64,000 nucleotides of DNA. It comes from Lytechinus pictus. Lineage: Eukaryota. A program made the position numbers and the translations under genes. The notes below the pieces were generated by a model that worked only from the letters and a program-made list of their open reading frames with translations, did not search any database and was not told the DNA's origin. Each line of letters starts with the position of its first letter. The stretch's first letter is position 1. Positions 4,942 through 52,274 of the stretch are shown piece by piece. Where the stretch lies: the NCBI RefSeq assembly GCF_037042905.1, contig NC_087261.1:13702001-13766000 (forward strand), written 5' to 3'.

Positions 4942-6385
4942 CAGATGTTCTTTTCATGGCCCAGGGGGGGGGGGGCACGTCATGCATCTTTCTCGAAATA
5001 TGTCATGGACAAAGGGCTTGTACTTTCATTGGAATGAGCCAAAATAGATGGTTTGGGGTATTTCATCAGTGTACAACGGGGACTTCACGCATCTCCGTCG
5101 CATTGCCAATGGGAGGATCCACACGACATGAGCCAGCTCAACATTAAAACGCAACTTCAAAAATCATGCGCAACTTGATTTTCAACCTATCAACAGCGCG
5201 CATTTGGGACTTGCGTTTAAACGCAACTCTTTCTGCAACGGACCCCAGAACTTTCTTATCATTTGTCCAATAGTTTTCAAACTTTTGTGGTTGATGTTAT
5301 TCTTTGAATTTTCTGTTTTCACACGATTTGCTCACATGTTCCAAGCGTTTCATTCTCCTGTGAACAACTTTTATATTCATTTGTGAAAGAACTGGAGATG
5401 ATAGCGATTTAATACATTCTCCCTCCATCTCCCCCTTCCCTGCCTTCTATCACCCCCCCCCCCCTCTCTCTCTCTCCCCCTCCCATTCCTATACGACCCC
5501 TTACAGCTCACTGGCTCTCCGCACCTTCTCTCTCATTCGCATATTCACATAACAAAACCGCGCTCTGACACACACTCCCTAGCTCATCATGGTGTCAAAT
5601 TGTTATGAATTTTGTTGTACTAGTGAAATATCCACACTCAGATAAAAAAAAATAATGAAAAATACGGATTGTCATTGCAATGTACTCCTTTATTTTTCTA
5701 TCAGTGCTCCAGGAAATAAAATAGCAAAGGTGCTTTATGAATAAGCAAAGTCTTCGCCACGAAGAAAACCGAGCTTTACTAACTTTATAGAATCACATTA
5801 ACTTGAAAATAGCAAAAAATTTGATTGTTTTCTTTTATAAGAATCACGGAAAATAAAACACATGATGTGAAGTTATTGCATTACGTTTACAATACACATT
5901 TAGTCCCGATTCTTTTTTGTCAAATATAATAGTCGTGTTCTTCAAGTACCGTAAGCTATATATTGAGACATCCCCCTGTATTAAAACCTGGGCCCTCCAA
6001 TACAATATGTTTTTTCCATGTATTCTCATCAACTGAATAACTGTAATGTTTTCGTTACTACTTTTATCATTATTTTTTTTTAATTATTATTATCATAATT
6101 ATTATTATGATCATTTTATTTATCTTGGCATTATCATCATCATCGTCAACATTATACGATCGTTATTGATATGGTTGCACATAATTATATCAAATTATCA
6201 TAATTATTACCAATGTCATTTTTTGTAATTATCATTATTATTGTGAGTAGGGTATATTGCTGCATCTGCTACTAACATTACTTTTTAGTAGTAACGTTAT
6301 CATAATAATCTCCATGGGGAGAATTCATAACCCCCTGATCCCCCCCCCCCCCCAACTAACATCGCTCTATAGGACCATCACACCT

Positions 6386-6391
6386 TTTATT
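6386..6391 (-). terminator. Candidate polyadenylation signal of the mucin-like gene
   Basis: AATAAA on the minus strand about 150 nt after the stop at 6539. Confidence 0.4.
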
Positions 6392-6538
6392 TCTCATTTT
6401 AGTAATTACCAATGTATATGTAATAAATCTAATATTTTAAAAGATTTAGAATACAAGTCACGTTATCAAAAGACGGTGTCCTTAGGGTAAACAGTAAAAT
6501 GGGCATGACCACATTTAACCATTCCACACATTAGCATA

Positions 6539-7644
6539 TCAACGAACGGAATTACCATCCTGGCCTCCTGTAACTCCAGGTGGTGGGGCGGTTGTAGAAT
6601 CAGGTGGGGGTGCGGTTGTCGAATCAGGCGGTGGTGCAGTTGTAGAATCAGGTGGTGGTGCGGTTGTAGAATCAGGCGGTGGTGCGGTTGTAGTATCAGG
6701 CGGTGGTGCGGTTGTAGAATCAGGTGGTGGTGCGGTTGTAGTATCAGGCGGTGGTGCGGTTGTAGTATCAGGCGGTGGTGCGGTTGTAGTATCAGGCGGT
6801 GGTGCGGTTGTAGTATCAGGCGGTGGTGCGGTTGTAGTATCAGGCGGTGGTGCAGTTGTAGAATCAGGCGGTGGTGCGGTTGTAGTATCAGGTGGTGGTG
6901 CGGTTGTAGTATCAGGCGGTGGTGTGGTTGTAGTATCAGGTGGTGGTGCTGTTGTAGTATCAGGCGGTGGTGCGGTTGTAGTATCAGGCGGTGGTGCGGT
7001 TGTAGTATCAGGTGGTGGTGCGGTTGTAGTATCAGGTGGTGGTGCGGTTGTAGTATCAGGTGGCGGTGCGGTTGTAGTATCAGGCGGTGGTGCGGTTGTA
7101 GTATCAGGTGGTGGTGCGGTTGTAGTATCAGGCGGTGGTGCGGTTGTAGTATCAGGCGGTGGTGCGGTTGTAGTATCAGGCGGTGGTGCGGTTGTAGTAT
7201 CAGGCGGTGGTGCGGTTGTAGTATCAGGTGGTGGTGCGGTTGTAGTATCAGGCGGTGGTGCGGTTGTAGTATCAGGCGGTGGTGCGGTTGTTGTATCAGG
7301 CGGTGGTGCGGTTGTAGTATCAGGCGGTGGTGCGGTTGTAGTATCAGGTGGTGGTGCGGTTGTAGTATCAGGTGGTGGTGCGGTTGTAGTATCAGGCGGT
7401 GGTGCGGTTGTAGTATCAGGTGGTGGTGCGGTTGTAGTATCAGGTGGTGGTGCGGTTGTAGTATCAGGTGGTGGTGCGGTTGTAGTATCAGGTGGTGGTG
7501 CGGTTGTAGTATCAGGCGGTGGTGCGGTTGTAGTATCAGGTGGTGGTGCGGTTGTAGTATCAGGCGGTGGTGCGGTTGTAGTTGCCGGTGTTGGTGCGGT
7601 TGTAGCCTCGTCACAGTATCGTCGTTTGATCTCTTTTAGAAGAT
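6539..7644 (-). CDS. Terminal coding exon 5 of secreted Thr/Pro/Asp-repeat (mucin-like) protein
   Basis: Acceptor ttttgcag|AT CTT CTA (phase 1); encodes (D)LLKEIKRRYCDEATTAPTPA(TTTAPPPD)n...GVTGGQDGNSVR*. Repeat variants are synonymous or T->S in this frame. Confidence 0.85.
6575..7582 (-). repeat. 24-bp coding tandem repeat, about 42 units (TTTAPPPD)
   Basis: Plus-strand unit ATCAGG(C/T)GGTGGTGCGGTTGTAGT repeated without indels. Confidence 0.97.
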
Positions 7645-7864
7645 CTGCAAAATCCGACAAATAATTCATTTCATTCATTTCCCTACTACAACAATAGTTC
7701 TCTATTGTATATTCATTCTTGCTTCACAATCTGGTCACGTAATAGTATTACAATACAGTGGCAACCTGTGATTTTTGTTCAAGTAGTGAAGGAGGGGGGG
7801 GGGAGAAAGAACAAGACTGAGGAAAGAAAAAAGGACATGAAAATCAATGGCACTTGAAGAGCCT

Positions 7865-7998
7865 NNNNNNNNNNNNNNNNNNNNNNNNNNNNNNNNNNNN
7901 NNNNNNNNNNNNNNNNNNNNNNNNNNNNNNNNNNNNNNNNNNNNNNNNNNNNNNNNNNNNNNNNNNNNNNNNNNNNNNNNNNNNNNNNNNNNNNNNNN
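7865..7998. other. Assembly gap (others at 17072-17217 and 30401-30539)
   Basis: Runs of N. Confidence 0.99.
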
Positions 7999-8105
7999 CC
8001 ACATGTATTTCTCTCTTTTGTCACCAGAAATCGGTGGGGGGGGGGGGGGTAGGGGCCGAAAATAGCGATGTAAGTAAGTTTTGTTTAAATACAAATGGTA
8101 CTTAC

Positions 8106-8123
8106 CAATGATCTCTACAATTT
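8106..8123 (-). CDS. 18-nt micro-exon (coding exon 4) of the mucin-like gene
   Basis: ttttttttacaacag|AA ATT GTA GAG ATC ATT G|gtaagta; phase 1-1; joins PC(Q)IVEII(D)LLKEIKRRYC into one amphipathic helix. Confidence 0.72.
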
Positions 8124-8554
8124 CTGTTGTAAAAAAAAATCGAAAAGAAAATAAAGAAACGCTATGAATAATGAAAATTACGAAATGGAAATAGCCTGCT
8201 AAAACATTTTTAAAGCTCACAGTACAATGTTTCCAAATTAACACAAAGATGCATCTGAGTGTTATTACACTCATATTTTTTTTTGCGAATTTCAGTGCAT
8301 TTCTGTCTCCAGAGATTTTTTGCAATGTGTCAATACTAGAATTGATTACCGTAGTAATGGGAATAAAGTACCACCCCCCCCCCAAAAAAAAAAAAAAATT
8401 AAATTAAAATACCCAAGATAATATCCCCAAAACATTTCCCACAGCATGGTTGATAGAAAACACAACTTTCGAATACCGTTTTCAATTACTTGCTATCATA
8501 AGTTCAATGCCTTACGAAAATCCCCGAACTGCATATAATTATTTAAATTTATAC

Positions 8555-8811
8555 ACCGGTCATGGTGGCTCAGTGGTAGAGCGTGCGCCTCGTGAACATG
8601 GTGATCGGGAGGTCGTGGGTTCGATCCTCGACCGAGTCATACCAAAGACTTATAAAAATGGGGACATTTTGCCTTCTTGCCATATAGGCGCTCGGCATTT
8701 AGACTGGAGAAGGGTAATAATAACATGTTATGCGGGGCCCGCTGGTAGAGCAGTTTCCTAACTGAAGTGGCTACCCTGCATGAGTAAATAAAACATTATT
8801 ATTATTATCAT
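8555..8811 (+). mobile_element. tRNA-derived SINE, antisense in an intron of the mucin-like gene
   Basis: A box TGGCTCAGTGG, B box GGTTCGATCC, body GAGTCATACCAAAGAC..AAAAATGG, tail AAATAAAAC(ATT)n; flanked by a 50-bp direct repeat. Confidence 0.88.
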
Positions 8812-8939
8812 TCATAAGTTCAATGCCTTACGAAAATCCCCGAACTGCATATAATTATTTATATTTTATACCTTGAAATAAGAGTGGTAATGACTGTGGA
8901 CGACACGAAAGGCCTGCCTGTTTTATTCAATATCATTTG

Positions 8940-9500
8940 TTCAGGGGGCAAGCCCGCCCCCAACAAAAATATAGATCTGGATGAAAAAAAAACTAACAAA
9001 CATTATACTGAAAATTTCATCAAATCGGGTGTGAAAGGTGTGGCGTTTAAAATTTTCACTTATACTTTTCAAAGCAGTTTATATTTGCATATCACTTTCT
9101 GGTTGCAAGTGAGGTAAGGTAACTGATGATGTCATCCACTCACCATTTCTTTTTTATTTTATTTCATATAGTTTATATGAAATATCATAATTTTATCCTC
9201 AATTGAATATGAAACAAGATTTAAATCTTCATTGGATATGTGGGTTTGTCAATGGTGCCATATATTGTTATTCCATGAACATGCTTCTTTATTTTCTATC
9301 TGAAATATTGACATTTTGTTTATTTCATATGTCAAAATGAAAAAAGATAGCGGATGTGTGATATTTTCGACTTTTTCATTTGCATATCACCTATAATGTG
9401 AAAATAAGTGAAACTTCAAAATGTCATAAATTTCTTATTTAACATTAGCTTTTGATGACAATTTCAGCGTCACACTCCTGTGATTTTCTTCTTTTGAGGT
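8940..9500. mobile_element. Decayed Kolobok-like MITE (family of 45088-45691)
   Basis: Shares GAAAATTTCATCAAATCGG, ACTGATGATGTCATCCACTCAC and AAATGTCATAA blocks with 45088-45691; termini eroded. Confidence 0.55.
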
Positions 9501-9695
9501 AGCCTATAATCTAGGCGGAGCCTGCAGTTATTGTCTATGCTGTTATGCTGAACGCAACCGATACGTCTGATCTTGCAAAGACTACGCATTGTGGCTGCGT
9601 CGCAGCCACAATGCATAGGCTACTTCTGAGGTGAACTTGCTCTTGAAATATAGCTCCCGTTGCTTAAATTTTGAATAAACAGAAGCGGAACTTAC

Positions 9696-9782
9696 GGCAA
9701 GGAGTCAATTCAGATGCCTTTGCTTTAGCAAAAGACGAAGCGTCATCGTAAGTAATACCGCAATTTGTGTAGTCCTCGATTT
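9696..9782 (-). CDS. Coding exon 3 of the mucin-like gene (87 nt)
   Basis: cttattgctcttctgcag|AA ATC GAG ... CCT TGC C|gtaagt; open frame (K)IEDYTNCGITYDDASSFAKAKASELTPC; phase 1-1. Confidence 0.78.
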
Positions 9783-9816
9783 CTGCAGAAGAGCAATAAG
9801 AAATGGAATTGTACAA

Positions 9817-9939
9817 GAACAACAACAACAACAATAATGACAATAATAATAATTATAATAATATAATAATAATAATAATGATGATGATGATGATAATAAT
9901 AATAATGATGATAATCATGATGATGATAATAATAATAAT
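9817..9939. repeat. Compound (AAC)/(AAT)/(ATG) microsatellite
   Basis: Directly visible trinucleotide runs. Confidence 0.9.
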
Positions 9940-10367
9940 TGACATGAAAATATTTATATATAGCGCTTATAAAAAAAAACGTGTCTATAAGGCGCTCAAA
10001 GTGATAGATGAAAATAAAAAAGAACTTCAGGCAAACATCAATTTATGCATGTGTAATTTACAGTAGAGGAGTTACATGGACTGTGTAAGACAATAGTGAC
10101 GATTATAATTACTAGGTTTTCAACATGTTCAACATGGATTTAAGATTTTGATTTTGTAGATTGTTCCAGAGTTGAGGGGATGCACAAGGCGAACGGATAT
10201 AAGCGTGTTTCATGAAAATGTTTGCCAGTGATTTTACTGAAATATCTTGTTTCTGATTGGCTGAGAACAATCAATCAGCGGAAAAATACTGGCAAAACTC
10301 TTCTTGACACCGCCCCTCCCCCTATAGAATTGGGTTAAATTGCATAGGATAACATAAGGGCTTATAT

Positions 10368-10492
10368 CAGAGGCGGCGGAACGTCAGGCTCATACAATGA
10401 AAGTGGAGGGGCACCAATTGTCACCTATTGTTTGGCAGACAAAAGTTACCCCTCCACTTTCTTTGTCCGAGCCTGACGTTCCACTGCCTCTG
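10368..10492. mobile_element. 125-bp hAT-type MITE
   Basis: TIR CAGAGGCGGCGGAACGTCAGGCTC / GAGCCTGACGTTCCACTGCCTCTG; perfect 8-bp TSD GCTTATAT. Confidence 0.88.
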
Positions 10493-11166
10493 GCTTATAT
10501 ACACTGAATTTTGACTCATGTTGCATTTGTATTGTTAATATGGACAAAAAACACGCACAGGAAGAAAAAAATCGTGAAGAAAAATACAAGATATCTGTGA
10601 CTTGATAAATCATCATTTACTAAATCCCTGGAGAGATTATTAATATGTTAGCATAATGGGAAGAGGACGGTGTTTTCGCAGTGACAAGTGCAGGGGAGCC
10701 ATGCAGCTCAGATTATTAGTCAGGTTATCAGTCAGGTTATTATGGTTGTTATTTGAATATGATTGCATTGAAAATAGTGTGCGTAATAAGCATATGCCGA
10801 TAAAAAGATATAAGATATTGAACCAATGGGATGATAATTATTTTGAATCTTAGCAGAAATTATGTGTTAGTTTTGCATAATTTCATCAAAGAAGTTTTAC
10901 AAAAAAGATGTCACTGATTAGCTGCAAGTATCAGGGTTTTATCCTCTAACATGTCTAAGCATTAATGTCTAGAAAAAAATCTTAATTTACGTTATTGTAC
11001 GCTTACTAAGAAAAGTGGGAAGTGAAGCCCCCCCCCCCCCTCGCCCCGCCCCAGCGATTGCCCCATTCCCAATATGCTCTGCAATAAGAAGGGAATGTAT
11101 TAGAGGATCTACGTCAAAATAACGAATTAACAGATTTAACAAGAATTAAGGTTCAGAATATCTAGT

Positions 11167-11763
11167 CTCCGGGCTGAGGGTATTTATATCTCAATAAATA
11201 GAGAAGATTCACAGAGCAAAATGCTGAAGTATTGATTAGAATCGGATAACAAATTACGAAGAAATTGAATTTTAGAGATTCGCATTATTCCGATTAAACT
11301 GTTCTAGGCATGTCTTCATGAATATTCATTAGGTGGGCTGATGATGTCACTTCCCCTCTTGTTCTTTTGTATTTTATTATATGAAATTAGGTTAAATCAA
11401 ATTTTTCTACCAAGAACTAAAACAATTGGATTGACAACTGATTAAGTGCATTGGTTATTTCTTGCTGCAACTTATTTCATTATAATAGAGAAACGTCATT
11501 GTACAAACCAATGAAAATTTGAAACAATCATGATTTCATAATAACATAAGAAAAAGAAAAGTGGGGACGTGACATCATCAGCCCACCTAATGAATATCCA
11601 TGAGGACATGCCCTGAACCGTTTCACCGGAATAATGCAAATCTCTAAAATTCAATAATTTTGTTATTTTTCATCAAATTTTGATGAAATTCTTGGAATTT
11701 TGCTTAGTGAATTCTATCAGTCTATTTATTGAGATATAAATATCCTCAGCCCGGAGTATTCCT
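11167..11763. mobile_element. Kolobok-like MITE (family of 2307-2915), left end damaged
   Basis: Collinear with 2307-2915; right end CAGCCCGGAGTATTCCT|TTAA. Confidence 0.78.
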
Positions 11764-11912
11764 TTAAAAGCTTTAGAATATAAATAAGAACTCTTTCATT
11801 TCTTTTTCATGCAAACTTGTGACTCTCTTGTAATTAACTTTTATTCGCAATCTGCAAATTTCTTTGATATCTTACTGGGAAAAAAATGATCACGATCAGT
11901 GATAATACTTAC

Positions 11913-12002
11913 TTAGACCATAACATTCCAGGTAACTCATGATTGTAGACAGTGAATAAGTATTGACAATTGAGGTGTTGAGATTAGCACAATCAAACTC
12001 CG
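11913..12002 (-). CDS. Coding exon 2 of the mucin-like gene (90 nt)
   Basis: ttttttctatcacatgtaaacag|CG GAG TTT ... GGT CTA A|gtaagta; open frame (S)EFDCANLNTSIVNTYSLSTIMSYLECYGL. Needed in the model because exon 1 joined straight to exon 3 gives TAA. Confidence 0.75.
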
Positions 12003-13252
12003 CTGTTTACATGTGATAGAAAAAAAAATATGAAATTAGTATTCATTTAAGTTAAAATTACATCCCTATACAGGTGTGACGTTTACAGGGGACAGGGTAT
12101 AGTTCCCTATGATTTGCTTTTAAATACTTATATTGGTGTTAGTGTAAAATGGCAAAGGATGAATAACACCGAAAACAAGTCACACACCCAAAAAAAAAAT
12201 CCTTTACAAAAGAGCGGATTGGGTCTTGGAAATTTATATTTTCTAAGTTTTAGTAAAGAAGAAACTGACGTCATCTTCAGGCGGTCTTGCCCCCCCCCCT
12301 AAGTACTTAAATACAATGGCGCCATGCTTGGGCCCCGTTTTTCGGACCCTCTAACATTTTACTTTGTCTCAAACGATTAACGACACTGCACGATAAGTTA
12401 ATAACGATCATACAGACTACAGGTCACTCTCAATCCCAAACCAACAATAATTTGGTAGGGAACGTTCTCTTAAAATTGGCAGATTGTAGGCTTAATTTTA
12501 TGCATAAGATTAATGCATAATTTTTGATATTATACTTCCGAAATTTGAAGTTGTAAAGTTTAAATAAAGATATTTCAATTAGGCATTCAAATAATACTAC
12601 TTGTTTGCACTTTGCAAAAGGCATTCAAAATTTTAGATGAAAAAAAATGTCAAATTCTAAAATTATGATTAAAACTCAAGTCGTACGAATCGGAAAATAA
12701 GGCATGTTTTCAAATCCGAGACTTAAATGATTATTTTCAAGAGGAAATTCTTAATATTATATTTTTTTTCTTTTTACATATTTCTATTCGAAGTATTCTT
12801 TTTAAGAGTGGGGGATATCCAGTCCTAGTTTTCAATTTTATGTGTACTTTGCACTAATAAAAGTGTACTTGACATTGCGAAAAAAAAATGAGAGTGTTGC
12901 CGCAATAAGTGGGCTTGGATCTCAAAAACATAGGATCTATCTTATGATGGCCAGCAAATCGCGTATCAATTTTTGGCAAAATATATGAAAAAACTGAAAA
13001 AACACCCCTCATAACACCGCTAAACTGTGATAAAATTGGAATTGCGGTGCTATCATTGTCACAACTTTGAATATAGAGAAAATAACGCTGAAGTCAGCTT
13101 TGTAACACTTTTGAGCCGAAAATAGGGGAAAACGGCTAAAAACACCATAAAAACGCCGCTGATGAGGGAAGGAGGGGGGGGGGGCAATTCTGAATTGTAG
13201 CACTATCATAGTCATACCTTGAAATATAGAGTGACAATAATATAACACTCAC

Positions 13253-13364
13253 ATGATTCCGACTCCGATGACGTTGATGGATAGTTGTTATAATAATAGG
13301 TTGCGTCGACCAGCACATTGCCCATCAGAACACATGATACAATTATAAACAGCGCCCCCTTCAT
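13253..13364 (-). CDS. Coding exon 1 of the mucin-like gene (signal peptide)
   Basis: ATC ATC ATG AAG...: MKGALFIIVSCVLMGNVLVDA/TYYYNNYPSTSSESES, then T|gtgagt donor (phase 1); hydrophobic core and VDA cleavage site. Confidence 0.8.
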
Positions 13365-13994
13365 GATGATCTCGCTCAGTCGTCGGAGGGTGTGTAAAAG
13401 TGGTTTGCTTCGAAGAAGTAAAAACAAGTAATAAAGCCAAGCAAAGACAGGAGCTGAAATGACGAATATATGGCTAAAGGAATAGAATGAAACCTGTATA
13501 TAATTTAGTTTTGGAACTGCTGCTGGAATGCTTCCCAGGGATTGGAGAGAGTGCATGCTTTGTATTAGGGTATTGTATGAAGTTATTAAAATTATAAGAT
13601 TTTGATTTGTGACGTCTTACGAACAGCTGCCACATATGGTTTATAATATAAAATACATAAATTAATATTTTCCATTGTTTGTGATAACTGATATTTTTTT
13701 TCTGTCAGGAGCGGGTGTGAAATGATTTGTCCATTGATATACTGAAGGAACAATATAAACCATTTTCATTTTATTTAAGAAAATTACATTTTATTGATTT
13801 GTCACCATATACAATATGAGAGAAAGCTGGTCACATATGACGTCATAAAAATAAATGAATAAATGTCTATAAGTTTTTTTTTGTTTCAGATGGATTTTCC
13901 TCAAACCTTTACCAATTTTTTTTTTATTATTTCTGTTAATTTTACAATAAACTTTTTGTCAGGGTGATGTAACTAAAATTGTTATCTGTTATGC

Positions 13995-17638: not shown

Positions 17639-18925
17639 ATGGCTATCATTGTCGGTGCTTTTACTACTTTCTACGCTCTCATATTCTGTATTGGGGTAAC
17701 GAGCAACCTTGTCATTCTAGCTGGGTACTCTAAGAAGAAGAAGAAAAATGGCACGGATATTTTCATCATGGGTTTAGCTGTAACCGATTTCCTATGCTCC
17801 GCAATATCTATTTTGAAATTCAGAGCATGGATAGCAAATAACGCATATTGCAAGCTTCAATTTGCCACCAATGTATGGTTTGCAAGTAGCCAGATGGCGT
17901 TGACTCTCGTAATTAACATTGACAGGTACTTGGCGGTGTGTTTCCCGGTTCACCGCCGACCTACAGTTCGCCGCGCGGTCATCACCGTTGCGTTTGCGTA
18001 TCTGGCTATGTTTTTCTTCTTTGCCGCTCCGAGTCTTATCCCGACGCATTACGATGACTTCATCAAAGATTGCATGTACAGGTCGGATATCAATTGGTTT
18101 AATCAATACGACAAATACATTGGGCAGGGGTTCATCGTGGTCACGGTCTCTGTTTCCTTATTGTTGTATTTTCGTATCATCCTCGCTCTGCGTCGCCAGT
18201 CCAAAGTGCGTAGCAGTCTCCTCCCAAATCTATCCAGTTCTAAAGCTCCCCATCGTGAATTAGGGACCAGTTCTGCTAATCTACCCAGAGTTGCCAATGC
18301 TATCTCTGAAGTACATCATGACAAGGCCTTATCACAGAATAGCCCAACTAAAGAGGGTGGTGTCATCCGGGATCGAGGTGGCTCATTCGTTGTCCAGGAA
18401 AGAATACTACATCCGAGGGAATATGAAGCAGAAGAAGATGGGGCTTCCACAATCTCAGACCGAGGGTTACCCAAATCCACCGACATTGCCGATGGCGGTA
18501 CCGAACCAAAACAACCCCAGACTGGTCAACAATCGGGAAGTGTTCCTGACGCACTTGATGGGCCATCAGGAACGGGTCCAACCTTGCTTTCAGCCAACAA
18601 ACCGAACACGAAACCGAGCACCGTTAACGCCAACCAGCTAACAGAACGGAGATTGACATTGATGTTGGGCTGCGTAACCGTCATCTATGCCGTCAGCCTG
18701 ATACCAATGTTTGTTGGCCGTTACATGCCGATCGAGACTCGCAGAGTTTTCATGAACAGGTCGAATATCCATCATACCATCTACGCCATCTTCATTCGTC
18801 TTTATGAGGTCAACTCGGTTATCAACGTTTTCGTTTACTGGAAACTAAATAGACGTTTTCGGAAGGATTGTCAAGAATTTCTTGCCAAGATCAGGCGAAC
18901 TATCTGTAAGTGCAAGATGCACTGA
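17639..18925 (+). CDS. Intronless class A (rhodopsin-like) orphan GPCR, type A, 428 aa
   Basis: Seven hydrophobic segments, SN (N1.50), LAVTD (D2.50), C3.25, IDRYLAVCFP, long S/T/P/G-rich ICL3, NSVINVFVYW and helix 8. Confidence 0.95.
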   Translation: MAIIVGAFTTFYALIFCIGVTSNLVILAGYSKKKKKNGTDIFIMGLAVTDFLCSAISILKFRAWIANNAYCKLQFATNVWFASSQMALTLVINIDRYLAVCFPVHRRPTVRRAVITVAFAYLAMFFFFAAPSLIPTHYDDFIKDCMYRSDINWFNQYDKYIGQGFIVVTVSVSLLLYFRIILALRRQSKVRSSLLPNLSSSKAPHRELGTSSANLPRVANAISEVHHDKALSQNSPTKEGGVIRDRGGSFVVQERILHPREYEAEEDGASTISDRGLPKSTDIADGGTEPKQPQTGQQSGSVPDALDGPSGTGPTLLSANKPNTKPSTVNANQLTERRLTLMLGCVTVIYAVSLIPMFVGRYMPIETRRVFMNRSNIHHTIYAIFIRLYEVNSVINVFVYWKLNRRFRKDCQEFLAKIRRTICKCKMH

Positions 18926-21724: not shown

Positions 21725-23026
21725 ATGGCCATCATTCGGAGCGTCTTTTATGTTTTCTACGCAATCATATTCGCCATCGGACTACCAAGCAATATGGTCA
21801 TTTTGGCGGTGTACGCCGCAAAGAGGAAAAAGAACGGAACAGATGTCTTCATCATGGGCCTGTCTATCACCGATTTACTCTCCTCGATGATATGCCTGCT
21901 TAAATTCAAGGTATGGGTCGCCAGTGACATCTTTTGCAAAATCGAATGGTTTATTGAAGGTTTGTTTATAGGTCATCAGTGGATGATGACAGTAATTATT
22001 AGCATTGACCGTTACTTAGCGGTGTGTTTTCCCATTCACCGTCGGCCGAAGGTCCGTCAAGCCATCATCATTGTCGCCATAGCTTATCTGTTTACGTTTA
22101 CGATGATGACACCATGTATTCCGGCGATACACTACGTTGACCTCATCGAAGACTGCATGTACAGGTCAGACCTCGAATGGTTCAAAAAGTTTGATAATTA
22201 CTTTGGACAAGGGTTCACCATTAGCATTATCTGCACGTCATCCTTATTCTATTACCGGACCATTTTTGCCCTTCGTCGCCTGTCAAAGGTTCACGCAAGA
22301 CTTGTTGGCAACCCATCTAGCAAATCGGCACTTCCAAGTGCCTCTAAGTATTCTTCGCACCTTAACCAAACCCATATCAACAACTCTGTAGAGACCGCAT
22401 CATGTGAACGGATACCTGGTCAGAAATCAGATGTCGATATTGGGCTTGGCAAGCCCAACCACCAAACAGATCAACCAACTGCTTACACCGATTCCAGAAA
22501 TACTCTATCCGGGTGCATCGATACATCTTTGAACGTCCCGCCAAAAGAAACATATCTACTTGCAACTACAAACGAGTCCTCTACAAGCCAAGGATCACAA
22601 AGCAATCTTGAAACCTTCTCTGGCAAACACCTTGACATGACTGGTCCTACCATTCCAACAGTTTCAGCATCGGTGGTCCCCAACGCTCCATCATCACAGA
22701 TGGCAATAGACCGTGGTGATCAGAATGACAAAAAAGACAGCCGACAGTCAGAAAAAAAATTGACGGCAACACTCGGTGTCATTACCAGTATCCAGCTCAT
22801 TACCATGATACCGTTAGTCATCGGTAGATATATACCCATTGAAACGAGGCAAGCATTCATGAGCAGATCTAACGCACATCATACCATTTATGCCATCATG
22901 TTTCGCCTGTGTGAAGTCAACTCGTTCATCAATGTGTTTGTTTACTGGCGATTGAACAAGGTTTTCCGTCGGGATTGTCAAGTCTTATTCGGACGTATCT
23001 GGCAGTCAGTCTTAAAAAAGAAGTAG
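21725..23026 (+). CDS. Intronless class A orphan GPCR, type B copy 1, 433 aa
   Basis: 7TM, PSN, LSITD, IDRYLAVCFP, NSFINVFVYW; paralog of 17639-18925. Confidence 0.95.
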   Translation: MAIIRSVFYVFYAIIFAIGLPSNMVILAVYAAKRKKNGTDVFIMGLSITDLLSSMICLLKFKVWVASDIFCKIEWFIEGLFIGHQWMMTVIISIDRYLAVCFPIHRRPKVRQAIIIVAIAYLFTFTMMTPCIPAIHYVDLIEDCMYRSDLEWFKKFDNYFGQGFTISIICTSSLFYYRTIFALRRLSKVHARLVGNPSSKSALPSASKYSSHLNQTHINNSVETASCERIPGQKSDVDIGLGKPNHQTDQPTAYTDSRNTLSGCIDTSLNVPPKETYLLATTNESSTSQGSQSNLETFSGKHLDMTGPTIPTVSASVVPNAPSSQMAIDRGDQNDKKDSRQSEKKLTATLGVITSIQLITMIPLVIGRYIPIETRQAFMSRSNAHHTIYAIMFRLCEVNSFINVFVYWRLNKVFRRDCQVLFGRIWQSVLKKK

Positions 23027-30165: not shown

Positions 30166-32439
30166 GAATTGAAAAAAAAAAAACGAGTGCGAAACACGAA
30201 AGAGTAAAGCACAATCACGAACAGACGAGCAGTTGTATATTGCTCACTAATTGTCGTTTTGAAACAGTCATTTTGAGGATGTACATGTCCACTAATATTC
30301 CTAAATGATTGTTGTAAAACGTTTAAAGTATTTTGCGTATATTTGCTGATTGTTTTTTTCCCTAGTGTATATGGTTCTTTGACCATATTCATCACAAAAT
30401 NNNNNNNNNNNNNNNNNNNNNNNNNNNNNNNNNNNNNNNNNNNNNNNNNNNNNNNNNNNNNNNNNNNNNNNNNNNNNNNNNNNNNNNNNNNNNNNNNNNN
30501 NNNNNNNNNNNNNNNNNNNNNNNNNNNNNNNNNNNNNNNATTTTTTCAGGTGTGACTGTCCAAAATATTCAATAAATTAACCACCGTCCACCCTCCTTCC
30601 TCAATCAACTCATTTGAACTATCAATTACCTTAGCGTTTCGATAATTTTAGATTTCCCCCACAACTTTCTGTCGAGCAAAACTGCAGTTACAAACATTTT
30701 TTTTTTAATTAAAAGATACAAATCTTTGCAAGCAATGTTCTTGCTTGGGTGGTTATCTGAAATGTCTCATTGTAAAAGCAACGAGTCATGATATCAAATT
30801 GCATTAACCACTGATAGATGAATAACTCATCCATTTCTTTTGCACGGTCGAATACCTCATAAAAGAAATAATTCCTATTCTAATGCATTTATGCAATCCT
30901 CGTATTAGGCCAACACGACTTTGATATGAAATATTCTATTCTTTTATATTAATGGGTCTTTGATTTTTTTTCTGGATTTGGAGTCCGAGGATTAGGATCG
31001 CAGGACGCCATTAAATTCTCTTTTCATAATAAATCTATCTTTCTAAACAATACTGAATACAATAATGAATGTAAGAATAATGGACTGCGCATTAAATCAG
31101 GGAGAATAGTGGAAAACAACAAAAAATCGAATTAAAACAGACATGCCCTTTATTTAATTTTTACAATGTCTCCGATGTCATATTTTAATGATATACATTT
31201 TAATTCTTTCAAGTGTTTTTGTGAGTAATGTCCTTCTTTGTTTGTATAATGGAATTTTCTTATTCCTAATGTAGCTCCAAGTCATAGAGATTAGAGATTT
31301 GTTTTCTTAATTTTAGGAACAATGAAATATAGTCCATTAATGGAAAGTCCCTAATGGCTTTTGCATTCATAAAAAATTGGAAGGGATTACGTTACAAAAT
31401 CCAGAAATAAAACATGCAGTGGAAGTTATCTGGTAGCATCTTCATCAAAGAAACTTCTTCGATTCCTGAGAACACTTGCTAATGCTTGGGTCATATTGTA
31501 CCTTTTATTATAATGAAGAAAGGGACAACTCCGGGTTAATATCACAGAACGCAGTACTCCCGGGGAGTTTGTATTTAAAGGAAGAAGAGGCAAGGTGACC
31601 CGAGGGTGACGCCATTGTTTTATTACAGTCGCACCAACAAACCTTCTCTGAACCACTGATCTCTGGACCAGTACTCTTGGCGGACCAAAGATTATTCCGA
31701 ATGGCAGGCATATCATTGGTTGACCTGGAGTAGGTTTCGTTGGCGTGAGTGTGACTGTAGAATAAGGGTCATAATCAACTACATAGCCAAATACTCTTCT
31801 TTATTCAATCTTACATTTTCTATTCTTCTCCATTTTTCCACTTGAAAAAATCACAGCTACACTGACTAAAAAACAATGCTGATTGCAAGCAAAGATTCAT
31901 TAAAAGTTTGAAAGAAAAGCAAAGTCGAATTTAAAATATACTGGTAATGATATTTCTTAAAGCTTTTGCTTTATTTAGTTCTTTATCTATACTTAATGGA
32001 CTACTATGCCTGTTGTACTTTTAGCAATTTACATCTATGCTACAAATGTGATAAAGAATACATTGCAAAGGAGGATGGGGTAGGCCGGGAGGACAAGCAA
32101 TTACGTCACTGATGTTCTTTCTTCAGCCAACATGAAACAAAGGTACAGAGGGATGGTGTTCCAGCGATATCTTCTGTGCCATGAACGTTTCTCAGTCCTC
32201 ACAAATTACATAAACTGATCTCTTTTGAATCAGGTTGAATTGGACGTTTTGAAATCCATTCAGAGATTATCCAACTGGTGTCCACATATAAAGCACTTAC
32301 TTCGTGTACGATACACCCAATCTTCGAGCAATTTTCGGAGTAACGTTGATCAGCCGTAGCCCCAACCACTCTACCAAAGGAACCAGGGAGCAAACGGCAC
32401 ATCTTGACTGACTGTTCCAGAGAAGCACCTGAATCGAAC

Positions 32440-33741
32440 ATGGCCATCATTCGGAGCGTCTTTTATGCTTTTTACGCAATCATATTCGCCATCGGACTGC
32501 CAAGCAATATGGTCATTTTGGCGGTATACGCTGCAAAGAGGAAAAAGAACGGAACAGACGTATTCATCATGGGCCTGTCTTTCACCGATTTATTTTCCTC
32601 GATGATATGCCTCCTTAAATTCAAGGTATGGGTCGCCAGTGACATATTTTGCAAAATCAAATGGTTTATTGACATATGGTTTATAGGCAATCAGTGGGCG
32701 ATGACAGTAGTTATTAGTTTTGACCGGTACTTGGCGGTGTGTTTTCCCGTTCACCGTCGGCCGAAGGTCCGTCAAGCCATCATCATTGTCGCCATCGCTT
32801 ATCTGTTCATGTTTACGATGATGACACCACTTCTTCCGGCGATACATTACGTTGAACTCATCGAAGACTGCATGTACAGGTCAGACCTCGAATGGTTCAA
32901 TAAGTTTGATAAATACTTTGGACAAGGGCTCATCATTAGCGTTATCTGCACCTCATCCTTATTCTATTGTCGGACCATTTTTGTCCTTCGTCGCCTGTCA
33001 AAGGTTCACGCAAGACTTGTTGGCAATCCATCTAGCAAATTGGCACTTTCAAGTACCACAAAGCATTCTTTGCACCTTGCACAAACCAATATCAACAACT
33101 CTGGAGAGACCGCATCATGTGAACGGATACCTGGTCAGGAATCAGATGTCGATATTGGGCTTGGCAAGCCCAACCACCAAACAGACCAACCAACTGTTTA
33201 CCCCGTTTCAGGAAGCACTTTATCTGGATGCAACGATACATCTTTGAACGTCCCGCCAAGAGAAGCATCTCTGCTTGCAACTACAAACGAGTCCACTACA
33301 AATCAAGGATCACAATGCAATCTTAAAACCGTCTCTGGCAAACACCTTGATGTGACTGGACCTACCACTTCGACAGGTGCAGCATTGATGGTCCCCAACG
33401 CTCCATCATCCCAGATGGTAGTAGACCGCATTGACAAGAATGACAAAAATGACAGCCGTTTGTCAGAAAAGAAATTGACGGCAACACTCGGTGTCATTAC
33501 CAGTATTCAGCTCATGAGCATGATACCGTTAGTCATCGGCAGATATATACCCATTGAAACGCGGCAAGCATTCATGAGCAGATCTAACGCACATCATACC
33601 ATTTATGCCATCATCTTTCGCCTGTATGAAGTCAACTCGTTCATCAATGTGTTTGTTTATTGGCGATTGAACAAGGTTTTCCGTCGGGATTGTCAAGTCT
33701 TATTCGGACGCATCTGGCAATCAGTCTTCAAAATGAAGTAG
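32440..33741 (+). CDS. Intronless class A orphan GPCR, type B copy 2, 433 aa
   Basis: ATG at 32440 in the same GAACATGGCC context as its paralogs (the track's 32404 start is a TTG); FDRYLAVCFP; intact ORF. Confidence 0.95.
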   Translation: MAIIRSVFYAFYAIIFAIGLPSNMVILAVYAAKRKKNGTDVFIMGLSFTDLFSSMICLLKFKVWVASDIFCKIKWFIDIWFIGNQWAMTVVISFDRYLAVCFPVHRRPKVRQAIIIVAIAYLFMFTMMTPLLPAIHYVELIEDCMYRSDLEWFNKFDKYFGQGLIISVICTSSLFYCRTIFVLRRLSKVHARLVGNPSSKLALSSTTKHSLHLAQTNINNSGETASCERIPGQESDVDIGLGKPNHQTDQPTVYPVSGSTLSGCNDTSLNVPPREASLLATTNESTTNQGSQCNLKTVSGKHLDVTGPTTSTGAALMVPNAPSSQMVVDRIDKNDKNDSRLSEKKLTATLGVITSIQLMSMIPLVIGRYIPIETRQAFMSRSNAHHTIYAIIFRLYEVNSFINVFVYWRLNKVFRRDCQVLFGRIWQSVFKMK

Positions 33742-36674: not shown

Positions 36675-38878
36675 TGTGATGGTGATTTTTTTGTGTAAAT
36701 CTTTGTATTATTTGTGATTGCCGGTAGATAATTGATTAAAGCAAAAAAGGGCTAAATGATCCTAGGGGATTTGTATGTGTTTTATTTAGGACAAGGTTTA
36801 TAGTAAGCCTTGTGGAATCACACACATCATGGTAATAATGTTTGTATGTCATTTGCCTTTAAATTAATTTTGAAAGTAAGAATGAGAATCGGACACGACT
36901 TGATGCATACAGGTTGAACACTGAGAAGAGAAGGATAGAGGCAACGAGGGAGAGACACATGGAAGAGGGAGACAGAGAAGGAGAAAGGAGAGAGAGAGAG
37001 AGAGACAGGGCGAGGAAGAAAGGGGGAAGAAAGAAAGAGATCAACAGAGATGCCGGGAGAGAGATATACCGGGAGAGCACAAAATAAATTTGTAAGTTGG
37101 TATTGGAAGTGATTTGCCTTTCAAGAACGACATGATCGTGTTAAGCGAATAGAGAAAATGAGAGAGAGCCATAGACAAACCTTTTATCGATAAAAAGAAT
37201 ATATAAAAAGTATTAACTGCAAAGACTTTAATGAGAAGAAAGAAAGACAAACATGTTTTTTCATTTATTCATTTCAGTTTCGTTATTCAGTTTTTTATTT
37301 ATTCATTTTTTTATTTTTATTCATTTAACTATTCATATTTTTTTTTTTGGGGGGGTAAACATTCTCGGGGCCCAGCCAATACGAGTGATTTATCTCAAGC
37401 CACAAATATTCGGCAACACCTTACTAATATTTTTTCCAGGGGCTATTAAAGTAGACATGAGAAGACGATCACAAAAACTGAGATTTACATATCAATAGAA
37501 AGGTTTCAACCCTGTATCTAACTCCATCCAGGTAACAAATAAAAAAGAAAATAACAAATTTAACCAACGAAACGCCACCAAAATCTGAAAGCTGGAAACG
37601 TAATTTCACGGAGAAAGGGTCGTTCAGGTGACGTCATGTCATGGTGTTTCTGAGTTGTGTACATGCACTTCAAAAACCCACGATCTCTCCCAACAGCAGA
37701 GCTTACATATATTTTGCGCTGGAAACATGGATATTTCTAAGATTTTTTACTTTATTCAGAGGAAAAACAAGGAAGCGATATGCAATGGTTATTTCTTTGT
37801 ATATCATCACAAAGATCGAAATATTAGCTGAGGGAATAAAAAGGGATACAAGGTTAGGTTACACAAAAGTAGCCTATGTACGGCGAATGAGGGACTTGGG
37901 AAGAAGGGCTAGTGTCTATAGTTAACTGATGTCTTAACTGCGATCATTTTTTTTTTATCATGTGTGGCTGCCTATATCACAAAACAGGCTTCATGCATAT
38001 TTTGAAAATAATCTTCATAATAATAGGCCGAATAACTCGAGTTTTAGCCAAGTTTTCCTGTCTGTTGATTCTTAGCTGACGACGTTTTTGTGATTGAATG
38101 TACTCTTCTGCAAGTGATGCGGCTTTTACCAGACTGAAGCATTGTAGAATCGTTTGCGAACAGTGACAGTTTGCTTTGCACAAACTCCGCTAAATATTTC
38201 TACTTAAAGTGAACTCCCAGGTACGTCGACCTTCATTTAATTTGTATACCAATAAGTGATTAAGACGTGGATGTACAAGGGATAAGTAACTTATGGGAGA
38301 CCGGACCCCCGAACAACCTCTTATCTTCCACGTAACCAATGTGCCTGTGTGTATATGGAGCTATATATGTAGCACGCAACCGCGTGTGCTACCGCGAAAA
38401 ATAACAACGACCGGGGAAGCATTTGAATAAACCCATCGTATAAACGTAGTCACTCACATCTCACAAATCTAAGTCAACAAAATGTTATTCACAATGTGAA
38501 CTACATTAATATGAACAATCGTACATAGGCTTTTGGGTTATATAGCTTTTAAAATTACAAAGTTTTTTTTGACACATTACAAAGTTTCTTCACATAGTTT
38601 TCTGTGCACAGCCGGTGACTAAAGGCATGATGTGACGTCACACGATCGAACTAATCCATTTACGATGCAGAGTTTCACGCTCATGGAACTCAAGTGGTAT
38701 TTCTGTGGTACTACACAATACAACAGACAATACCACATGGATAATAAGACTGGGGCTGAATCAGCCCCCCCCCCCCCCCGCCTCGACATTTTTCGTGATA
38801 GATCCGCCACGCCCATGTTTTTGACCGCGTCGCTCCCTGACTTTCTATTTTCAAGTCTTGCTCAACTTTTAAAACCAA

Positions 38879-43183: not shown

Positions 43184-44482
43184 ATGGCCATCATTCGGAG
43201 CGTCTTTTATGCTTTTTATGCAATCATATTCGCCATCGGACTGCCAAGCAATATGGTCATTTTGGCGGTGTACGCTGCAAAGAGGAAAAAGAACGGAACA
43301 GATGTATTCATCATGGGCCTGTCTATCACCGATTTACTCTCCTCGATGATATGCCTGCTTAAATTCAAGGTATGGGTCGCCAGTGACATCTTTTGCAAAA
43401 TCAAATGGTTTATTGACGGATCGTTTATAGGTCATCAGTGGATGATGACAGTAGCTATTAGCATTGACCGTTACTTAGCGGTGTGTTTTCCCGTTCACCG
43501 TCGGCCGAAGGTTCGTCAAGCCATCATCATTGTCGCCATCGCTTATATGTTAACTTTTACGACGATGATACCATGTATTCCGGCGATACATTACGTTGAA
43601 CTCATCGAAGACTGCATGTACAGGTCAGACCTCGAATGGTTCAAAAAGTTTGATAAATACTTTGGACAAGGGTACATCATTAGCATTATCTGCACGTCAT
43701 CCTTATTCTATTGTCGGACCATTTTTGCCCTTCGTCGCCTGTCAAAGGTTCACGCAAGACTTGTTGGCAATCCATCTAGCAAATCGGCACTTCCAAGTGC
43801 CTCTAAGAATTCTTTGCACCTTGCACAAACCAATATCAACAACTCTGGAGAGACCGCATCATGTGAACGGATACCTAATCAGAAATCAGATGTTGATATT
43901 GGGCTTGGCAAGCCCAACCACCAAACAGATCAACCAACTGTTTACCCGGTTCCGGGAAGCACTTTATCTGGATGCATCGATACATCTTTGAACATCCCGC
44001 CAAAAGAAGCATCTCTGCTTGCAACTACAAACGAGTCCTCTACAAGTCAAGGATCACAATGCAATCTGGAAACCGTCTCTGGCAAACATATTGATGTGCC
44101 TGGTCCTACCACTTCGACAGGTTCAGCATCGGTGGTCCCCAACGCTCCATCATCACAGATGGCAATAGACCGTGGTGATCAGAATGACAAAAAAGACAGC
44201 CGTCTGTCAGAAAAGAAATTGACGGCAACACTCTGTGTCATTACCAGTATTCAGCTCATGAGCATGATACCGTTAGTCATCGGTAGATATATACCCATTG
44301 AAACGCGGCAAGCATTCATGAGCAGATCTAACGCACATCATACCATTTATGCCATTATCTTTCGCCTGTATGAAGTCAACTCGTTCATCAATGTGTTTGT
44401 TTATTGGCGATTGAACAAGGTTTTCCGTCACGATTGTAAAGTTGTATTCGGACGCATTTGGCAGGTAGTCTTCAACAAGTAG
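43184..44482 (+). CDS. Intronless class A orphan GPCR, type B copy 3, 432 aa
   Basis: 7TM, IDRYLAVCFP, NSFINVFVYW; intact ORF. Confidence 0.95.
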   Translation: MAIIRSVFYAFYAIIFAIGLPSNMVILAVYAAKRKKNGTDVFIMGLSITDLLSSMICLLKFKVWVASDIFCKIKWFIDGSFIGHQWMMTVAISIDRYLAVCFPVHRRPKVRQAIIIVAIAYMLTFTTMIPCIPAIHYVELIEDCMYRSDLEWFKKFDKYFGQGYIISIICTSSLFYCRTIFALRRLSKVHARLVGNPSSKSALPSASKNSLHLAQTNINNSGETASCERIPNQKSDVDIGLGKPNHQTDQPTVYPVPGSTLSGCIDTSLNIPPKEASLLATTNESSTSQGSQCNLETVSGKHIDVPGPTTSTGSASVVPNAPSSQMAIDRGDQNDKKDSRLSEKKLTATLCVITSIQLMSMIPLVIGRYIPIETRQAFMSRSNAHHTIYAIIFRLYEVNSFINVFVYWRLNKVFRHDCKVVFGRIWQVVFNK

Positions 44483-51693: not shown

Positions 51694-52270
51694 AGGGATA
51701 CTCCATGCAGGCTGAATATAAATAGAGAAAAATCAGACAAACAGAACACTGAAAATTTGATCAAAATCGGACAACGAATAACAAAGTAATGGTATTTTAA
51801 ATATGTACATTATTCCGGTGAAACAGTTTTAGAATGTCTTCATGAATATTCAGTGAGCAAATTGATGATGTCATATCCCCACTTGTTTTTTTTTTATTTT
51901 ATTTATATGAAATAAGGTTTATTCAATTTTTTTTCTACCAAGAACTAAACAAAAAATGGATTGGCAACTGATTTAGTACGCTAGATACTAATTGCTGCAA
52001 ATCATAAGAGACACATTATTCACACATTTATTGTATGAAAAAATGGAACAATTATGATTTCATGAGGAAAGTGGGAATGTGACATCATCAGCCCACCTAA
52101 TGAAAATTCATGATGACGTGCATATAACTATTTTCACAAAATAATGCTAAACTTTAAAATTCAATAACTTTGTTATTTGTAATTCGATTTCGATAAAATT
52201 TTCAGCCTTTTGCTCTGTTAATTTTACTATATTTATTTAGATACAAATATTTTCAGCCTGGAGTACCCCT
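51694..52270. mobile_element. Kolobok-like MITE (family of 2307-2915)
   Basis: TTAA|AGGGATACTCCA ... TGGAGTACCCCT|TTAA. Confidence 0.82.
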
Positions 52271-52274
52271 TTAA

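Follow-up and report, generated by a model that had tools for sequence, protein, structure and literature searches.

A minus-strand Lytechinus pictus gene predicted to encode a secreted, mucin-type protein with a five-cysteine head and a TTTAPPPD stalk

Gene structure and annotation at the locus

The DNA analysed here comes from Lytechinus pictus, the painted sea urchin, and the window denotes the whole stretch of 64,000 nucleotides (64 kb). Five coding exons of 112, 90, 87, 18 and 1106 nt lie on its minus strand, summing to 1413 nt (470 codons plus TGA), and joining them in frame across introns that are all GT-AG yields a protein of 470 aa. The features are, from 5′ to 3′ along the gene:

13365..13620, minus strand: 5′ UTR and putative promoter, placed solely by motifs and conservation
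13253..13364, minus strand: exon 1 coding part, 112 nt, with the ATG at 13364-13362, signal peptide (aa 1-21) and Tyr/Ser/acidic linker; donor GTGAGT
11913..12002, minus strand: exon 2, 90 nt, phase 1-1, opening stretch of the head (Cys42, sequon at N46, Cys64)
9696..9782, minus strand: exon 3, 87 nt, phase 1-1, mid-head with Cys75 and Cys96; acceptor CTGCAG, donor GTAAGT
8106..8123, minus strand: exon 4, an 18-nt microexon, phase 1-1, six residues in the last predicted helix of the head
7865..7998, no strand: assembly gap (N) inside intron 4, outside every coding frame of the model
6539..7644, minus strand: coding portion of exon 5, 1106 nt with the TGA counted, spanning the last stretch of the head (Cys113), a single degenerate unit, the 42-unit repeat and the 11-aa tail
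6575..7582, minus strand: tandem repeat of 42 x 24 nt (TTTAPPPD, aa 124-459), units counted at the protein level
6386..6391, minus strand: AATAAA polyadenylation signal, 147 nt 3′ of the stop codon

The donors read, in order, GTGAGT, GTAAGT, GTAAGT and GTAAGT, every acceptor is YAG preceded by a pyrimidine tract, and the internal exons are phase 1-1 without exception. The microexon is flanked by a T9 tract with a CAG acceptor and by a G/GTAAGT donor; on neither strand of the window is there another stop-free phase 1-1 candidate whose sites are as strong, and the chance expectation for such a candidate in intron 4 is about 0.02-0.05. Public annotation of L. pictus (GCA_037042905.1) holds a minus-strand gene that ends exactly at the 13364 ATG and whose unnamed product has 470 residues, a length that requires the six microexon residues. 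The junctions are thus placed by sequence signals, by this public gene call and, for exons 1 and 2, by conservation in Lytechinus variegatus. The five-exon model of the first-pass annotation is borne out by consensus splice sites, phase and the public 470-residue call. Its description of the gene as hidden holds for a prokaryote-style ORF track only, since the public annotation has the same start and the same length, and the L. variegatus orthologue is annotated too.

The assembly gap lies 107 nt past the exon 4 donor and 220 nt ahead of the exon 5 acceptor. As it is inside intron 4, continuity of the frame is set by splice phase and not by unread letters; an additional exon could lie within it. 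The listed ORF at 7735..8385 is an artefact whose reading runs across the N stretch. A poly-C run is found just upstream of the gap on the minus strand.

A further in-frame ATG exists upstream, near 13553. Two indels, of 7 and 5 nt, disrupt its frame when L. pictus is compared with L. variegatus, and it was for this reason discarded in favour of 13364. The 50 nt preceding this ATG are nearly identical in L. variegatus; further upstream are a TATA-like box at 13502-13497 and a CRE-like GACGTCA beginning at 13616 and running downward. No paralogues were found within the window, and a weak match at 37092-37151, which lacks DNA similarity, was set aside as chance.

Layout of the predicted protein

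A short Tyr/Ser/acidic linker leads from the signal peptide to a head of ~75 aa; the TTTAPPPD unit then recurs 42 times before a hydrophilic tail of 11 aa closes the chain. Without modification the product would have a mass of about 45 kDa. By a rule-based reading, the signal peptide (aa 1-21) shows a charged n-region (K2), a hydrophobic core with the highest 19-residue Kyte-Doolittle mean (2.07, window from residue 3) and V-D-A ahead of the predicted cut. Cysteines occur at 11, which is within the signal peptide, and at 42, 64, 75, 96 and 113, thus five in the head, where the single N-x-S/T sequon (N46) is also found. Chou-Fasman propensities of the head give a mixed pattern with some helix-favouring stretches. 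Neither a transmembrane helix nor a GPI signal was detected: past residue 25 the highest 19-residue hydropathy mean is 0.73 and the tail is 11 hydrophilic residues. The layout proposed initially, including the five-Cys head with one sequon and the absence of a membrane anchor, agrees with composition, Cys positions and hydropathy, and a secreted, mucin-like nature is supported by the signal peptide together with the 42-unit Pro/Thr/Ser-rich array.

TRF reports a 24-nt unit with 42.9 copies and 95% match at 6577-7605. The 42 protein units comprise 35 TTTAPPPD, five STTAPPPD, one TTTTPPPD and one STTAPPPG. At the DNA level two main variants, with CCG or CCA for the second Pro, are intermingled along the array, and divergence is greatest among the 3′ units. 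The 336-residue array is 38% Ser+Thr and 37% Pro, with 41 acidic and no basic residues; over the stalk as a whole (aa 116-459), Ser+Thr account for 130 and Pro for 128 of 344 residues. Three of the six frames stay open through the repeat. Variation is synonymous in the TTTAPPPD frame for 8 of 12 variant types (26 of 35 occurrences), a test that the antisense frame (SGGGAVVV) passes equally well, so that the latter is excluded by the splice, signal-peptide and annotation evidence alone.

Conservation in L. variegatus and searches with head and stalk

At the syntenic L. variegatus locus, which adjoins an orthologous GPCR, an orthologue of 378 residues is annotated; like the annotated 470-residue L. 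pictus product, it has no Pfam match in the precomputed record. The sequence-level comparison covered exons 1 and 2, where the ATG and the splice sites of both exons are all kept. Exon 1 carries two in-frame 6-nt deletions in L. variegatus, and the exon indels are all in frame. Exon 2 is identical at 85 of 90 nt, the differences being four synonymous changes and one Ser-to-Thr that retains the sequon. Exons are 94% identical against 86-89% for introns, and dN/dS is 0.21 over 63 codons. For the part of the head encoded by exon 2 (29 codons), four synonymous changes and one conservative change point to purifying selection and not to fast divergence. The length difference of 92 residues (470-378) equals 4, from the exon 1 deletions, plus 11x8, as expected if the species differ by entire repeat units while the head keeps its length. 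Repeat number therefore probably differs between the species, with 42 units in L. pictus and 31 in L. variegatus.

Searches for relatives of the head returned little. Taken exon by exon, the head pieces gave no match at E<=10 in Pfam or PDB apart from DUF5767, the sole Pfam match, which was obtained with the piece at the start of exon 5 at an E of 0.23, far under its cut-off. ESM Atlas scores for the same type of pieces stayed at or below 0.67, with no match. The head-stalk junction, searched against protein databases in length ranges for fragments and full-length models, returned nothing at E<=10 and also missed the annotated product itself. With exon 2 against 1.84 billion cluster representatives, a single match (P0019, E 6e-4) was obtained; the L. 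variegatus orthologue, 97% identical over the exon 2 piece, was missed as well, which makes this a weak negative. P0019 is a Cys-free repeat protein matched in four repeated stretches, and we regard the match as chance. On visual inspection, its PG-rich repeats are reminiscent of those of STPGR (sperm-tail PG-rich repeat) proteins. Metagenome contigs contained 0 matches to a degenerate DNA pattern written for the conserved T-I-M-S-Y-L-E-C-Y-G. The initial statement that the head resembles no recognised domain agrees with the empty Pfam record on the 470- and 378-residue products and with the exon-piece searches, which are weak negatives; the head may represent an unrecognised family, or possibly a known fold.

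Matches to the stalk were found when exon 5 was searched against 5.8 billion proteins (P0001-P0018). These are bacterial and fish Thr/Pro linkers whose identity reaches 77% at most and whose alignments span no more than 40% of the query, sitting in unrelated proteins (LysM, fasciclin, SRCR, histidine kinase); we rejected homology, the likeness being one of Thr/Pro-rich low complexity and compositional only. A literature search found no paper containing the TTTAPPPD motif, and the literature on sea-urchin mucin-like repeats held nothing relevant to this gene.

Protein class, proposed mechanism and alternatives

We consider this a real protein-coding gene, conserved in L. variegatus, whose product is probably a soluble, non-gel-forming, mucin-type secreted glycoprotein (probability roughly 0.78). 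A signal peptide and a long Pro/Thr/Ser-rich tandem repeat are both present, pointing to a mucin-domain secreted glycoprotein with predicted O-glycosylation. The hallmarks of gel-forming mucins of the MUC2/MUC5 type (VWD-C8-TIL, C-terminal cystine knot) are absent in Pfam searches of the full products and exon pieces, and the protein is too short for this class; those of membrane-tethered mucins (SEA domain, transmembrane helix, GPI signal) are absent from the 470-aa product.

Two known systems, human MUC7 and Drosophila Sgs3, offer a comparison of layout. In MUC7, likewise, a signal peptide precedes a non-repeat N-terminal domain of modest size with few Cys; a central Thr/Pro/Ala-rich tandem array that is an O-glycosylation substrate follows, and the C-terminal tail is short. 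Membrane anchor, VWD and cystine-knot domains are missing from both proteins. There is, however, no sequence relationship: MUC7 has about 6 copies of a 23-residue unit, against 42 copies of an 8-residue unit with an invariant Asp position in L. pictus, and the five-Cys L. pictus head is unrelated. Drosophila Sgs3 is also secreted, with short Thr-rich tandem repeats of variable number and a Cys-containing end thought to cross-link chains. Sgs repeats are basic (PTTTK type) in contrast to the acidic repeats of L. pictus, and the Cys-rich regions are unrelated.

From this architecture one may reasonably expect dense O-glycosylation, a polyproline-II rod and, given the odd number of Cys, disulfides between chains. 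After signal peptide cleavage, four of the five head cysteines would pair as two internal disulfides, leaving one, probably Cys113 where the head meets the stalk, to bridge two chains or tie a chain to a partner. Golgi polypeptide GalNAc-transferases may glycosylate most stalk Thr, because Pro stands at +3 of the second and third Thr (a Thr-x-x-Pro context only). The glycosylated, Pro-rich stalk would then form an extended, protease-resistant, hydrated and anionic rod of roughly 85-105 nm. The head could serve for interaction or cross-linking, the stalk could provide spacing and bind water, and the likeliest job of the whole would be that of a component of extracellular mucus or of a surface coat.

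A more specific assignment, which we think unlikely, is to a coat with a reproductive or adhesive role (egg jelly, vitelline or hyaline layer, tube-foot adhesive) in which the head would provide specific binding. Secreted mucin-like repeat features are common among gamete-coat and adhesive proteins, and this product shares them, along with a head of unrecognised family and a repeat number that probably differs between congeners. The comparable part of the head, however, is under the purifying selection seen in exon 2, with the low overall dN/dS given above, and nectin, bindin-receptor or sea-star footprint protein domains are lacking, there being no Pfam match on record.

Still less probable is a role in the calcite skeleton (test, spine, spicule or tooth) as an acidic matrix protein whose spaced Asp would bind Ca2+ or mineral faces. 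The excess of acidic over basic residues in the stalk and the stalk's low calculated pI, about 4, favour it, and mucin-like tandem-repeat proteins occur in biominerals, mucoperlin of Pinna nacre being one. Yet the geometry is poor: by standard rises per residue, one Asp every 8 residues would place carboxylates about 20-25 Å apart in an extended polyproline-II or mucin conformation, too distant for cooperative chelation, and the regular Ca2+-binding ladder proposed in the first-pass annotation is for this reason unlikely. SM30/SM50-type sea-urchin spicule matrix proteins combine a C-type lectin domain with Gly/Pro/Gln-rich repeats; here neither is present, with no Pfam match on record and TTTAPPPD as the repeat.

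That the locus is non-functional, a minisatellite tied to chance upstream exons by gene predictors, would suit a repeat open in several frames and an annotated product that protein searches did not return, but is very improbable given four consensus introns in uniform phase, a bona fide signal peptide, a polyadenylation signal past the stop, conservation in L. variegatus of start codon, splice sites and in-frame indels at the dN/dS reported, and like products called independently in two species.

Returning to the mucin-type secreted glycoprotein, we tentatively speculate, as a possibility that we hold with less than even confidence, that the head is a small disulfide-bonded domain not described before and confined to sea urchins, perhaps even to Lytechinus with its close relatives, and that its unpaired fifth Cys joins two ~100 nm acidic glyco-rods as a defined dimer or fixes the rods to a matrix partner. 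If true, a novel head domain with an unpaired Cys would be a new structural element of the echinoid extracellular coat.

The main outcome is corrective: the gene is real yet already annotated, the Ca2+-ladder idea is weak, and there is no bearing on a long-standing question. L. pictus is under development as a genetically tractable urchin whose secreted mucin-type proteins are for the most part annotated yet unstudied. A compact design, with nothing beyond a small head and a very regular stalk, makes this protein a convenient case for the function of lineage-restricted mucins, and also for the behaviour of an unpaired Cys combined with a strictly periodic, acidic and predicted O-glycan rod.

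Gene model, annotation and neighbouring elements

A spliced and conserved gene lies in this region; its product is a soluble, secreted protein in which a small cysteine-bearing head is joined to a very regular Thr/Pro/Asp repeat. The minus strand was read from 6300 to 13600 and the five proposed exons were spliced by script, returning 1413 nt (470 codons plus TGA), in exact agreement with the figures of the first-pass annotation.

Exons of the gene under study
13364-13253, minus strand, exon 1 coding part, 112 nt
12002-11913, minus strand, exon 2, 90 nt, phase 1-1
9782-9696, minus strand, exon 3, 87 nt, phase 1-1
8123-8106, minus strand, exon 4 (microexon), 18 nt, phase 1-1
7644-6539, minus strand, exon 5 coding part, 1106 nt

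The donors are, in order, GTGAGT, GTAAGT, GTAAGT and GTAAGT, acceptors of CAG or TAG type are preceded by pyrimidine tracts, every internal exon is in phase 1-1, and an AATAAA signal is found 147 nt past the stop codon. The gene had been described as hidden. With the adjoining intronless GPCR ORF (17639-18922, plus strand) as anchor, an exact-product look-up placed the window on record CM073242.1 of NCBI GCA_037042905.1, a Lytechinus pictus assembly (PMC11082199), where a called minus-strand gene has its upper end exactly at window position 13364 and a 470-residue product. The gene model is therefore already public and goes unseen only on a prokaryote-style ORF track. This is a real, unstudied gene that is already annotated and is shared at least among Lytechinus species as a conserved locus.

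Neighbouring ORFs and intron elements
17639-18925, plus strand, intronless ORF 1, PF00001 (7tm_1) class-A GPCR in public annotation
21725-23026, plus strand, intronless ORF 2, PF00001 (7tm_1) class-A GPCR in public annotation
32404-33741, plus strand, intronless ORF 3, member of the tandem cluster
43184-44482, plus strand, intronless ORF 4, member of the tandem cluster
11167-11756, intron 2, MITE-like element of ~590 bp, 36-nt terminal inverted repeats (97% complementary) and longer imperfect arms
10368-10492, intron 2, small palindromic element, 55-nt arms, 84% complementary, 15 nt apart
9833-9939, long (AAT/GAT)n microsatellite (period 3, 36 copies), only ~50 nt ahead of the exon 3 acceptor
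8485-8866, intron 3, pair of 66-nt direct repeats (91% identity) with a spacing of 316 nt
7865-7998, intron 4, N stretch (assembly gap)

The four intronless ORFs form a tandem cluster (428-445 aa, all on the plus strand) whose naming is inconsistent across sources: 5-HT1A-like, TRH-receptor-like, D3-dopamine-like and GHS-receptor-like. Kin of the MITE-like element are seen at 2303-2466, 2784-2919 and 51754-52274. The stretch between the 66-nt repeats reads like a tRNA-derived SINE remnant, and ARAGORN detected no intact tRNA within 8485-8866. Length variation of the microsatellite could influence exon 3 splicing.

Conservation, microexon and assembly gap

The 90% cluster of the adjoining GPCR includes members named L. 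pictus and L. variegatus. Its L. variegatus orthologue (P0022) led to the syntenic locus GCA_018143015.1, CM031031.1:6391908-6413194, in which a minus-strand gene with a 378-residue product extends past the locus end; syntenic counterparts also exist for the first two intronless ORFs. Comparison by TBLASTN and DNA alignment, covering exons 1-2, shows the same ATG in both species and identical exon 1 donor, exon 2 acceptor and exon 2 donor. Exon 1 carries two in-frame 6-nt deletions in L. variegatus, and exon 2 shares 85/90 nt, with four synonymous changes and a sole Ser-to-Thr replacement that keeps the N-x-S/T sequon. Identity is 94% in exons versus 86-89% in intron 1, part of intron 2 and the 5′ flank; dN/dS is 0.21 and dS 0.17 (Nei-Gojobori, 63 codons). 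The 50 nt immediately 5′ of the ATG are near-identical. A long upstream open frame with an ATG near 13553 was rejected as coding because 7-nt and 5-nt indels separate the two species upstream of the gene's own ATG. The difference in product length (470-378 = 92 = 4 + 11x8) fits an orthologue with an unchanged head and 31 repeat units, compared with 42 in L. pictus.

Since the frame also holds without exon 4, this microexon was tested separately. A scan of both window strands for 6-60 nt segments with a YAG acceptor, at least 10/15 upstream pyrimidines and a GTRAGT donor returned 9 segments, of which exon 4 alone is also free of stops and in phase 1-1. With a tract of 9/15 pyrimidines allowed, there are three. 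About 0.02-0.05 exon 4-like segments are expected by chance in this 2-kb intron, and its six residues are needed to reach the annotated length of 470.

The gap sits in intron 4: 107 nt separate the exon 4 donor from its near edge, and 220 nt separate its far edge from the exon 5 acceptor. It is not crossed by any coding frame in the five-exon model, and continuity is given solely by the end of exon 4 and the start of exon 5 both being in phase 1. A stop at 7726-7724 closes the exon 5 frame, so no read-in from the gap is possible. The gap could harbour an extra exon, which both the public product of exactly 470 residues and the unchanged head fitted by the L. variegatus length arithmetic argue against. 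The listed ORF 7735..8385, which spans the Ns, is an artefact. Poly-C/poly-G runs longer than 10 nt lie near the gap edges (within 7999-8105 and 7778-7864), with comparable homopolymer runs at 11030-11045, 12290-12300 and 6340-6352; such runs may have caused the assembly break.

Protein layout, repeat array and homology searches

Computed properties bear out the proposed layout of signal peptide, five-Cys head with one sequon, repeat and hydrophilic unanchored tail. The signal peptide (residues 1-21) is typical, with V-D-A ahead of the predicted cut, and Cys11 is lost with it, leaving a mature chain of 449 aa, ~45 kDa unmodified, with a low calculated pI (about 4). The head (22-115) has cysteines at 42, 64, 75, 96 and 113 and the sequon at N46; a crude Chou-Fasman propensity count favours helix at ~82-91 and 98-108 and strand around 22-26 and 48-52. 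A K-R-R motif two residues ahead of Cys113 is a possible cleavage site. The 344-aa stalk contains 130 Ser+Thr, 128 Pro, 41 acidic and zero basic residues. As no hydrophobic segment occurs past residue 25 and the 11-residue tail is hydrophilic, a TM helix and a GPI signal are absent.

According to Tandem Repeats Finder, 6577-7605 contains 42.9 copies of a 24-nt unit (95% match), encoding 42 protein units: 35 TTTAPPPD, 5 STTAPPPD, 1 TTTTPPPD and 1 STTAPPPG, with diverged units at the 3′ end. In the proposed frame 8/12 unit variant types (26/35 occurrences) are synonymous, against 2/12 and 0/12 types in the remaining two sense frames. The antisense frame SGGGAVVV, which has its third codon positions in common, scores equally well, so the synonymy test alone cannot choose the strand; splice sites, signal peptide, annotation and the AATAAA signal settle it.

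The precomputed Pfam record is empty for both full-length products (470 and 378 residues). The head was searched as separate exon pieces, with queries of only 30 aa. Against Pfam, the exon 1, 2, 3 and exon 5 start pieces gave only DUF5767, for the exon 5 start piece (E 0.23, far under cut-off); the exon 2 and 3 pieces returned nothing at E<=10 among PDB sequences and unnamed clusters with scores <=0.67 in the ESM Atlas. Among 1.84 billion representatives, the exon 2 piece had a single match, P0019 (E 6e-4), a 611-aa repeat protein that, judged by eye, resembles the sperm-tail PG-rich repeat type; it has zero cysteines, matched over four repeated stretches, and was rejected as chance. The L. 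variegatus orthologue, 97% identical in this piece, was not recovered, so its cluster is invisible in that set, and this, together with the short queries, makes the head-search negatives weak. The earlier statement that the head resembles no recognised domain thus stands at the Pfam level only. Three word-index protein searches likewise missed the gene's own product; counting the search of the representatives with them, none of the four returned the L. pictus or the L. variegatus product though both are in the gene-position index, probably owing to repeat-driven clustering or composition filters. Empty results for proteins dominated by repeats call for caution in these libraries.

Proposed working and likeness to known mucins

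Proline at +3 is a favoured context for polypeptide GalNAc-transferases, and in every unit Thr 2 and Thr 3 have it. By what is established for mucin-type O-glycosylation and polyproline-rich sequences, O-glycans may occupy the majority of the stalk's roughly 125 Thr/Ser and, with the triple Pro, would keep the chain extended as a rod of ~85-105 nm (2.5-3.1 Å per residue). Four head cysteines could pair internally; the remaining one, for which Cys113 at the head-stalk junction is the most plausible choice, would be free for a dimer or partner link. The regular Ca2+-binding Asp ladder suggested by the first-pass annotation is a weak idea: successive Asp would lie ~20-25 Å apart on an extended chain and rotated around its axis, so multidentate sites could not form, and any binding should be of a diffuse electrostatic kind.

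The architecture is like that of small soluble mucins such as MUC7 and insect glue mucins such as Sgs3, a likeness that involves no sequence relationship. The protein has none of the domains by which gel-forming mucins, membrane mucins or the spicule matrix proteins of sea urchins are defined. It belongs with the mucin-domain secreted glycoproteins, its head having no Pfam family on record, and is most likely a soluble mucin that forms no gel and is part of mucus or an extracellular coat.
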